DNA of 64,000 bases from Macrostomum lignano (taxonomy: Eukaryota): contig NIVC01000024.1 in NCBI GenBank assembly GCA_002269645.1, positions 186,001 to 250,000 on the forward strand, given 5' to 3'. The notes beneath the pieces were generated by a model. It searched no databases. It was not told the origin of the DNA and saw nothing but the letters and a program-made list of their open reading frames with translations. Both the position numbers and the translations under genes were made by a program. Shown one piece after another: positions 26,003-29,000 of this stretch (its first letter is position 1; every line of letters begins with the position of its first letter).

Positions 26003-29000
26003 TCAACGCTGCTCCCAGCGATGCGGTGATGGCGGCATCTCGGCGGTCTGGGCGACGCTGGATCTGCGAAATGGATCGAGAAAATTGAATTAGAATAATA
26101 AAATGCGCTTTTCATCTACTGCAGTGAGTAGCAGACTGCAGACATTAATGCCACTAAGACTGACAAACCATCGCAAAAATGTGATACCTATAAGCTGACA
26201 CAATATCATCCTGCCAGCTGACACAATATCACCCTGACAGCTGACACAATATTACCCTGACAGCTGACACAATATCACCCTGACAGCTGACACAATAGCC
26301 CTAACAGCTGACACAATATCATCCTGACAGCTGACACAATAACCCTAACAGCTGACACAATATCATCCTGACAGCTGACACAATAACCCTAACAGCTGAC
26401 ACAATATCATCCTGACAGCTGACACAATAACCCCCTATTGCAGCGCATGGCTTAAGTACGCCAGACGCCTACACAACCTGCGCCACGCTGTGAAATGACT
26501 TACCTGTGAAAGAAACCCTAAAGCAAAATTAACGCAGTTTTGGGTAAACGGCAGGAGTAACTATGACTGTCTTATCAAGCCTAAATGCCTCGGCATCTAA
26601 TTAGTACCGCGCCGCGCCGTACTAATCGCCGCGCGCCGTACACGCCGCGCCGCGCCGTATTAGATCCGCGCCGGACGCCGTCCGCCAAAATGCCCATGCG
26701 CTGCAATCAGGCAATAACCCTAACAGCTGACACAATATCATCCTGACAGCTGACACAATAACCCTAACAACTGACACAATATCATCCTGACAGCTGACAC
26801 AATAACCCTAACAGCTGACACAATATCATCCTGACAGCTGACACAATGTCACCCTGACAGCTGACACAATGTCACCCTGACAGCTGACACAATAACCTCA
26901 ACAGCAGACACAATAACCCCAACGGCTGACACAATAACCCCAACAGCTGACACAATATCACCCTGACAGCTGACACAATGTCACCCTGACAGCTGACACA
27001 ATGTCACCCTGACAGCTGACACAATAACCCCAACAGCAGACACAATAACCCCAACGGCTGACACAATAACCCCAACAGCTGACACAATATCACCCTGACA
27101 GCTGACACAATGTCACATCCTGACAGCTGACACAATAACCCCAACAGCAGACACAATAACCATAACAGCTGACACAATGTCACCCTGACAGCTGACACAA
27201 TATCACCCTGACAGCTGACACAATGTCACCCTGACAGCTGACACAATAACCCCAACAGCTGACACAATATCATCCTGACAGCTGACACAATAACCCCAAC
27301 AGCTGACACAATAACCCCAACAGCTGACACAATAACCCCAACAGCTGACACAATGTCACCCTGACAGCTGACACAATGTCACCCTGACAGCTGACACAAT
27401 ATCATCCTGACAGCTGACACAATGTCACCCTGACAGCTGACACAATGTCACCCTGACAGCTGACACAATATCATCCTGACAGCTGACACAATATCATCCT
27501 GACAGCTGACACAATGTCACCCTGACAGCTGACACAATGTCACCCTGACAGCTGACACAATGTCACCCTGACAGCTGACACAATGTCACCCTGACAGCTG
27601 ACACAATGTCACCCTGACAGCTGACACAATATCATCCTGACAGCTGACACAATGTCACCCTGACAGCTGACACAATATCATCCTGACAGCTGACACAATG
27701 TCACCCTGACAGCTGACACAATATCATCCTGACAGCTGACACAATGTCACCCTGACAGCTGACACAATGTCACCCTGACAGCTGACACAATGTCACCCTG
27801 ACAGCTGACACAATGTCACCCTGACAGCTGACACAATGTCACCCTGACAGCTGACACAATGTCACCCTGACAGGTGACACAATATCATCCTGACAGCTGA
27901 CACAATGTCACCCTGACAGCTGACACAATATCATCCTGACAGCTGACACAATGTCACCCTGACAGCTGACACAATGTCACCCTGACAGCTGACAAAATGT
28001 CACCCTGACAGCTGACACAATGTCACCCTGACAGCTGACACAATAACCCCAACAGCTGACACAATATCATCCTGACAGCTGACACAATGTCACCCTGACA
28101 GCTGACACAATAACCCCAACAGCTGACACAATATCATCCTGACAGCTGACACAATGTCACCCTGACAGCTGACACAATAACCCCAACAGCTGACACAAAC
28201 TCAAACCCAACTCACTTGAGAAATCCCCGAAAGTTGACGGCCTGCCTGTTGAGCAGCAGAGGCATGGTCCGGTTCCTCGGATCCAGCTGGTTAATCCGCA
28301 TCACCAGGTCGGCCAGCTTCAGCCTGGCAGCGTGCACATCCGTGATGGCCAACTCCTCATTATCGGACATTGGAGTCAGGCACACAGGCTCTGGATGGTG
28401 CTGCTGCATTAGATGCGGCTGGTGCTGCAGGCAGGCATGCCGCTGGTGCTGGTAGGCGGATGAGGCGGGCCTCGGGCAGCAGGTGCACATGCAAGAGTGA
28501 TAGCGCAGCCTGGCTTCGTCAAGATAGGGATGCGACAGCGCCGATGCCGCTGTAGACCGCTGCTTCTGCAAGCGGGGCAAAGCAATTATGCTATTGAGTC
28601 TGGATTTCACCCAGTACAAAGGTCTTTTAACGGAAAATACATAGCAGGCTACTTATCAGTAGATGAAACCGCCTATAACTCCCTAATAATTTTCCTAGCG
28701 AAAATTTTAAACTCAAAGTAAAAAATGATAAGTTCAACATACCGGGTTAAACATGAGCATATGCTCAAGCAGATGCAAAGCGTCCTCAGTCACTGTTTGC
28801 GACATCGACCAGATTGTGGTGGCCAACTTCGGCCGACGCTTCGGCAGTCGCAAGATGTACCTCCGGGCGGCTGTGCAGGCCGAGGTGAGATCCGAAAGAT
28901 CTGGCGTGCCTAGTAGATCCATTATTAGATCCAGCTGCGACAGCGGATTGCTAGCCTAGAGAAATAGATAATTGATTTCCGATATGTATCGAAAATTTAC

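Follow-up and report, generated by a model that had tools for sequence, protein, structure and literature searches.

A 278-bp insert in the genome of Macrostomum lignano (element A) carries a decayed piece of the 28S rRNA coding region within a 111-bp core module, and the same module recurs 25 kb away, with 103 of 111 positions identical (93%), inside a second small element with different ends (element B). We consider it rather likely that reshuffling has spread an old pseudo-rDNA module over non-autonomous DNA transposons, in which it is passive cargo, element A being a MITE mobilised in trans. Both elements lie in the window, the 64-kb stretch of DNA that was analysed as a whole; together with five further M. 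lignano loci (L001-L005, 137 kb in total) the DNA examined amounted to 201 kb, and the M. lignano assembly comprises several hundred megabases.

Element A and its insertion site

The features of element A and of the intron that holds it are as follows.
26064-28215, minus strand: last intron of an NLK paralogue, 2152 nt, holding the satellite and element A
26193-26433: host minisatellite, left part, ending in TSD copy 1 (TRF and phase analysis)
26425-26433, plus strand: TSD copy 1, CAATAACCC (satellite phase analysis)
26434-26711: element A, 278 bp, TIR- and TSD-bounded insert interrupting the minisatellite
26434-26450, plus strand: left TIR of element A, CCTATTGCAGCGCATGG
26451-26496, plus strand: left arm, without similarity to copy B or to the rest of the 201 kb
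26497-26607, plus strand: shared 111-bp core module, copy A
26542-26612, plus strand: clearly 28S-derived segment (LSU domain IV, H69-H71; Rfam LSU ~2244-2314)
26606-26659, plus strand: CpG-rich 19-nt tandem repeats of the right arm, 2.8 copies
26694-26711, minus strand: right TIR, reverse complement CCTGATTGCAGCGCATGG
26712-26720, plus strand: TSD copy 2, CAATAACCC (satellite phase analysis)
26712-28198: host minisatellite, right part (TRF)

The host minisatellite is built of 21- and 23-bp units with a 44-bp higher-order period, and element A is its sole break between 26193 and 28198. The two TSDs are identical at all nine positions. Removal of the insert together with one copy of CAATAACCC, in a scripted join of the flanks, left seven perfectly phased 44-nt satellite rows, whereas retention of both copies put the satellite phase off by 9. 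Because the phase is regained with one copy only, the repeat is a genuine 9-bp TSD and no by-product of satellite periodicity. The TIRs of element A match at 17 of 18 positions with one indel, are perfectly complementary over the inner 14 nt, and define an A-type terminus pattern CCT(G)ATTGCAGCGCATGG. The longest ORF overlapping this small, non-coding element encodes 53 amino acids. With its TIRs, a TSD whose empty site can be reconstructed, and its size, all MITE characters, element A is a TIR- and TSD-bounded non-coding insert of the cut-and-paste type. The TIR alignment and the phase restoration thus bear out an earlier note on this DNA, which had described a 278-bp insert with 17-18-bp TIRs and an 8-9-bp TSD splitting the satellite. 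That note had also assigned the satellite to an NLK intron, and exon placement agrees: the last coding exon of the NLK paralogue was located at 26003-26063(-) from the C-terminus of the M. lignano model P0003, and the preceding exon ends at 28216, with the junctions AA|GTGAGT ... CAG|A. Given the exon bounds at 26063 and 28216, the last intron consists almost wholly of the satellite and element A. NLK is encoded on the minus strand, and the 28S-like strand of element A is therefore antisense to it.

The right arm of element A (26608-26711) has a G+C content of 71% and contains 23 CpGs in 104 nt (CpG observed/expected 1.81), compared with 47% G+C in the surroundings. The GC-rich repeats previously noticed behind the 28S segment are present there with a period of 19, and they start within the 3' end of the module. 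That the insertion is comparatively recent and element A fairly young is suggested by three features: the TSD is perfect, the TIRs are nearly so, and the CpG-rich arm is undecayed. Among the transposon superfamilies, a TSD of 9 bp fits Mutator-like or Merlin-like elements, and this length, taken by itself, points to a Mutator-like or Merlin-like mobilising enzyme.

Searches of the 201 kb with the 14-mer of the A TIR, allowing up to two mismatches, returned no second copy, and the arms of A or of B had no match elsewhere in the same DNA. Within the 201 kb, element A is so far a single copy and not a demonstrated family, and the association of the module with A-type TIRs at other places, as the earlier note had envisaged, was not seen in this tiny sample, in which the TIR 14-mer is unique. 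The homeologous site of element A is absent from loci L001-L005, the L001 contig stopping short of it. The sequence of L001 (assembly GCA_002269645.1) agrees with the opening 13 kb of the window at 85-98% identity, and the window is probably a homeologous copy or comes from another assembly. Ten long ORFs of the window, which come no closer than 1.1 kb to copy B and 7.5 kb to copy A, were compared with Pfam, and none belonged to a transposase, reverse-transcriptase, or other transposon family. Look-ups of the NLK-type models of the window and of the small ORFs within A and B gave no matches. Three copies of another interspersed repeat in L005 that contain ATTGCATTGCATTGCATCGCATCG (at 3323, 6717, and 13993, plus strand) match the A TIR with two mismatches and are unrelated to element A.

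The 28S-like module and its second carrier

The conserved 28S string on which the earlier note had based its count of about 54 matches in 64 positions is identical to positions 2244-2307 of the Rfam LSU consensus. The segment 26542-26605 matches it ungapped at 54 of 64 positions, with exact runs of 15, 12, 11, and 10 nt, and the match proved significant on proper alignment: element A reached a local alignment score of 90 against the Rfam consensus, compared with 15.9 +/- 2.1 for 1000 dinucleotide shuffles (z=34.7). In the same shuffle test against the LSU consensus, copy B gave z=28.6 and a third piece, found in locus L005, z=16.1, and a chance resemblance to 28S is excluded by these values (z=16-35). 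Rfam cmscan aligned positions 2200-2314 of the LSU_rRNA_eukarya model to 26497-26612(+) with 25.2 bits and E=4.9e-4 (551 nt searched). Element A covers 115 of the 3401 positions of the LSU model, and a score at half the gathering score (25 versus 50 bits) is expected for such a fragment. Within the module, the 3' 66 nt are 28S-like, and the 5' 45 nt bear only a marginal likeness to the upstream 28S sequence (p ~0.06-0.09). A scan of the whole window with Rfam at E<=1 detected no further rRNA-like pieces.

The second carrier and its parts are located upstream of the neighbouring WAPL gene, about 1.7 kb from the first exon.
51900-51907: left 8-bp TSD of element B, CTGATATT, directly adjoining
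51908-52212, plus strand: element B, 305 bp, with TIRs CATACATGTGCAA / TTGTGCATGTATG (11/13)
51941-52009, plus strand: three 23-nt tandem units, the third being the 5' end of the module
51991-52101, plus strand: 111-bp module, copy B (Rfam LSU 22.4 bits, E=0.0029)
52213-52220: right 8-bp TSD, CTGGTATT, directly adjoining, 7/8 match to the left copy

The arrangement of TIRs with directly adjoining TSDs seen in element B occurred in 0 of 300 shuffles of the region and in 0 of 250 real non-tandem windows of M. lignano. Element B is most probably another small TIR element, older than A and from a different family. The module is central in both elements, which are of similar length (278 bp for A and 305 bp for B). 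Their arms gave Smith-Waterman scores within the shuffle range, also with transition-tolerant scoring for CpG decay, and homology between the arms was rejected on these scores. A likeness between the TIRs of B and A (CATG...TGCAA) was likewise rejected, the motif being inside-out relative to the ends and made of short palindromes, and the module was discarded as a nested TE in its own right, having neither TSD nor TIR at its boundaries. The MITE family that had been proposed to disperse the module is thus upheld in one respect, the recurrence of the core at 51991-52101, but not in the other, since the TIRs of copy B are different, its TSD has 8 bp, and its arms are unrelated. Local slippage is visible at the edges of the module in both elements, as the 23-nt units in B and the 19-nt repeats in A. 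A 13-nt hairpin (ATTAGTACCGCGC / GCGCCGTACTAAT) pairs the right arm of element A with the 3' end of the module.

Within the 64-nt 28S block, six derived states are common to A and B, two are specific to A, and three to B, as polarised on the Rfam LSU consensus and not on the host's own 28S. The six shared states indicate that A and B go back to a single ancestor that had already diverged from 28S, as opposed to two separate captures of rDNA, and that the cargo existed as a repeat before at least one of the elements arose.

The third piece, L005:11064-11128(-), is more decayed; a profile built on the two cores detects it at E=1.5e-4. It lies inside the M. lignano NLK paralogue P0007, in antisense orientation and about 1.1 kb from the start of the gene; copy A lies near the opposite end of its own NLK paralogue. 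The L005 piece keeps 28S states (GGCGGGAG, CTCT) that are lost from both A and B, and neither a TIR nor a TSD can be recognised around it. A tRNA-like head upstream of it was considered and rejected, as neither ARAGORN nor Rfam reported one. Exact-match searches with 20-22-mers specific to the module in viral, metagenome, and prokaryote-genome contigs yielded nothing beyond one chance match to a coding sequence (L006).

A minor feature of the module was noted at its 5' end, where the minus strand (26497-26525 and 51991-52019) reads TTTGCTTTAGGGTTTCTTTCACAG|GTAAGTC, in which a consensus donor comes directly after a pyrimidine tract with acceptor. Both copies retain this recursive-splice-like motif, which in copy A has the sense orientation of the NLK pre-mRNA; the plus strand of the motif mimics the 5' end of U1 snRNA (ACTTACCTG). 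An origin of the module's 5' end from U1 snRNA was rejected, with no U1 match in Rfam at E<=10.

Function and origin of the module

The earlier note had viewed the 28S piece as a mimic of the rDNA target of R2, I-PpoI, and Pokey. We take the recognition and cleavage cores of these targets to be CTCTCTTAAGGTAGC, TTAAGG|TAGCC, and, for Pokey, TTAA, all of which agree with the Rfam consensus. Neither CTCTCTTAAGGTAGC nor TTAAGGTAGCC occurs in the core of A or of B, and both copies have lost the TTAA of Pokey. Most of the differences of A and B from 28S cluster exactly at the R2/I-PpoI/Pokey core, and the L005 piece is disrupted at this position too. A role as a decoy or landing pad would require an intact target core, so the mimic reading fails. 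A structured non-coding RNA was rejected as well: folding energies of both cores on both strands were no better than those of shuffled controls (z from +0.1 to +1.8). Two substitutions common to A and B break base pairs of the first hairpin in the Rfam alignment and are uncompensated. The score below the gathering threshold, the fragmentary extent, and the broken helix pairs also dismiss a functional rRNA gene or a structure-preserving copy. The plus strand of the module contains TTTT, which would stop Pol III. On these features the module looks like passive cargo, neither a working R2/I-PpoI/Pokey target nor a structured RNA, and a functional reading of it is not supported; a decoy, landing-pad, or small-RNA role would be speculation, and nothing in the sequence calls for a small-RNA role.

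In the history that we favour, a pseudo-rDNA fragment would have been captured once and later reshuffled between non-autonomous elements, either through template switching in excision-gap repair or by fortuitous inverted repeats that recruited older repeat copies. The module would predate the insertion of element A and act as a repeat building block, its 3' two-thirds representing a decayed copy of 28S domain IV (H69-H71). The interior of element A may then be read as a mosaic of a 63-nt left arm, the 111-nt module, and the CpG-rich right arm, the last of which may have grown in part through slippage starting at the module's 3' end. Element A would have been moved in trans by a transposase, presumably Mutator-like or Merlin-like, and landed in the minisatellite of the last intron of the NLK paralogue.

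The conservation of the core at 93% between arms that cannot be aligned could alternatively mean that the core itself is under selection. The module might be a selectively maintained domain of unrelated non-autonomous elements, comparable to the central domains of SINE superfamilies and serving as a source of antisense-rRNA small RNA or piRNA or as an aid to spread. The sharp boundaries of the core and the similar central placement of the module in two different TIR elements of 278 and 305 bp speak for such a domain, as do the runs of 15, 12, 11, and 10 nt in the NLK pre-mRNA that are complementary to the Rfam LSU consensus (which here is not the host's 28S), a complementarity that results from the antisense orientation of the module to NLK in A. 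However, there are only two close copies, compensatory changes were not seen in them, the rRNA helices are broken, and the fold energy of either strand is no better than that of shuffles, while a mosaic origin accounts for the sharp boundaries equally well; we regard a selected domain as quite unlikely. Its fuller form, in which the module propagates independently as a selectively retained domain of several unrelated Macrostomum DNA transposons, a class II analogue of SINE central domains whose antisense intronic copies could feed a small-RNA/piRNA pathway complementary to H69-H71, seems to us very doubtful.

An origin from a retroelement is unlikely in our estimate. Here the module would be a piece of the 28S-like 3' UTR of an R2-type element, of an R2-dependent SINE, or of a short, internally deleted form, an element dispersed by reverse transcription before TIR elements enclosed or captured it. 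Some R2 lineages do have a 28S-like 3' UTR (PMC5035012), and every derived change common to A and B is located upstream of the R2 cleavage point or no more than 5 nt from it, with none in the 23 nt downstream, although this positional skew is not significant in a simple calculation (~0.07). The L005 locus also offers a third 28S-like piece of the H69-H71 region without TIRs, but this coincidence of region is partly by design, as the piece was found with a profile of A and B. Against a retroelement source, neither a poly(A) or simple-repeat tail nor a TSD lies directly beside the module in A or B, and there was no reverse-transcriptase match among the ten long ORFs scanned with Pfam. It is extremely improbable that A and B are independent rDNA fragments, such as orphon-like filler from double-strand-break repair, or resemble 28S by chance. 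The L005 copy, with the 28S states that A and B have lost, may be a separate fragment; for A and B themselves, independence is excluded by the six shared derived states, the same module boundaries, and a 5' part of 45 nt common to both, whose 28S identity is not clear.

Related systems and genomic surroundings

Element A resembles MITEs and Pack-type elements such as Pack-MULEs, being short and non-coding, with TIRs, a 9-bp TSD like that of Mutator-like elements, and an acquired host-derived interior. It differs from Pack-type elements in that the cargo is a decayed piece of the 28S coding region that was already circulating as a repeat module, and in that no autonomous partner or further copies of the A TIRs were found in the 201 kb. 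Pokey inserts at TTAA near the R2 site of 28S. The Pokey/mPok piggyBac elements of Daphnia share with A a DNA transposon/MITE lineage, an rDNA-derived interior, and a tie to the R2 region of 28S (PMC10946416). In contrast, their interior consists of IGS-derived repeats and their target is TTAA, whereas element A has a non-TTAA TSD of 9 bp, is inserted in a satellite, and carries a 28S piece that lacks the TTAA. SINE28 (Longo et al. 2015, PMC4994717) is, like the module, a dispersed low-copy mobile sequence built of 28S. However, SINE28 is a Pol III retroposon whose tails are A-rich or simple and whose TSDs are of the L1 type (PMC4994717), while the module derives from domain IV (LSU model 2200-2314 of 3401), is tail-less, and resides within TIR elements, which places it outside SINE28. 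The R2 lineages with 28S-like sequence in the 3' UTR (Kojima, Seto and Fujiwara 2016, PMC5035012) are similar to A as mobile elements with a diverged 28S region beside the R2 site. They are autonomous non-LTR retrotransposons of the rDNA, whereas element A contains no R2 sequence and its 28S piece extends across the R2 site, whose core is destroyed.

A 2024 review of rDNA and TEs lists SINEs with 5S promoters, Cassandra and Ajax TRIMs, SINE28, and Pokey/mPok with IGS repeats, and explains the rDNA modules of non-autonomous TEs by modular reshuffling, from which the TE in most cases gains nothing (PMC10946416). The 5S SINEs and the Cassandra/Ajax TRIMs are, like A, non-autonomous TEs with rDNA-derived modules (PMC10946416), but in these the Pol III promoter of the module has stayed functional and is of use to the TE, and no comparable function is evident for the 28S piece. 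The earlier note knew of no described MITE with 28S cargo, and the review's table of rDNA-derived TE sequences agrees, containing no MITE with a piece of the 28S coding region (PMC10946416). The module and TIR strings had no match in the searchable literature. If the module is common in Macrostomum, the few TEs listed with rDNA modules would be joined by a DNA transposon that holds a piece of the 28S coding region, and the module would provide a clean case of one module in MITEs with different termini, with a bearing on how MITE interiors are assembled. The M. lignano genome is very repeat-rich, and copies of the module can give spurious rDNA-like signals in FISH, read mapping, and rRNA filtering.

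Several observations concern the surroundings of the two elements. Tandem repeats make up 45% of the window (1-64000), in 43 arrays of 0.3-3.4 kb that are mostly 16-30-bp minisatellites; many of the arrays are intronic, and long spurious ORFs result from them. The unit of the satellite at 26193-28198 holds AACCCTAAC, equal to 1.5 units of a TTAGGG-type telomere repeat, within units that read AGCTGACACAAT... An intact tRNA-Arg(CCG) gene is located at 39313-39385(+), between NLK and WAPL and 3.6 kb upstream of the start of NLK, and was detected by Rfam (67.8 bits) and ARAGORN. The other neighbours are a single-exon thioredoxin-like (TXNDC17-like) ORF at 7052-7384(+), which is 98% identical to an M. 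lignano protein, a CNBD2-like cyclic-nucleotide-binding protein gene at 11039-19851(-), WAPL at 43733-50276(-), and an EF-hand protein gene from 60083 onward (+).
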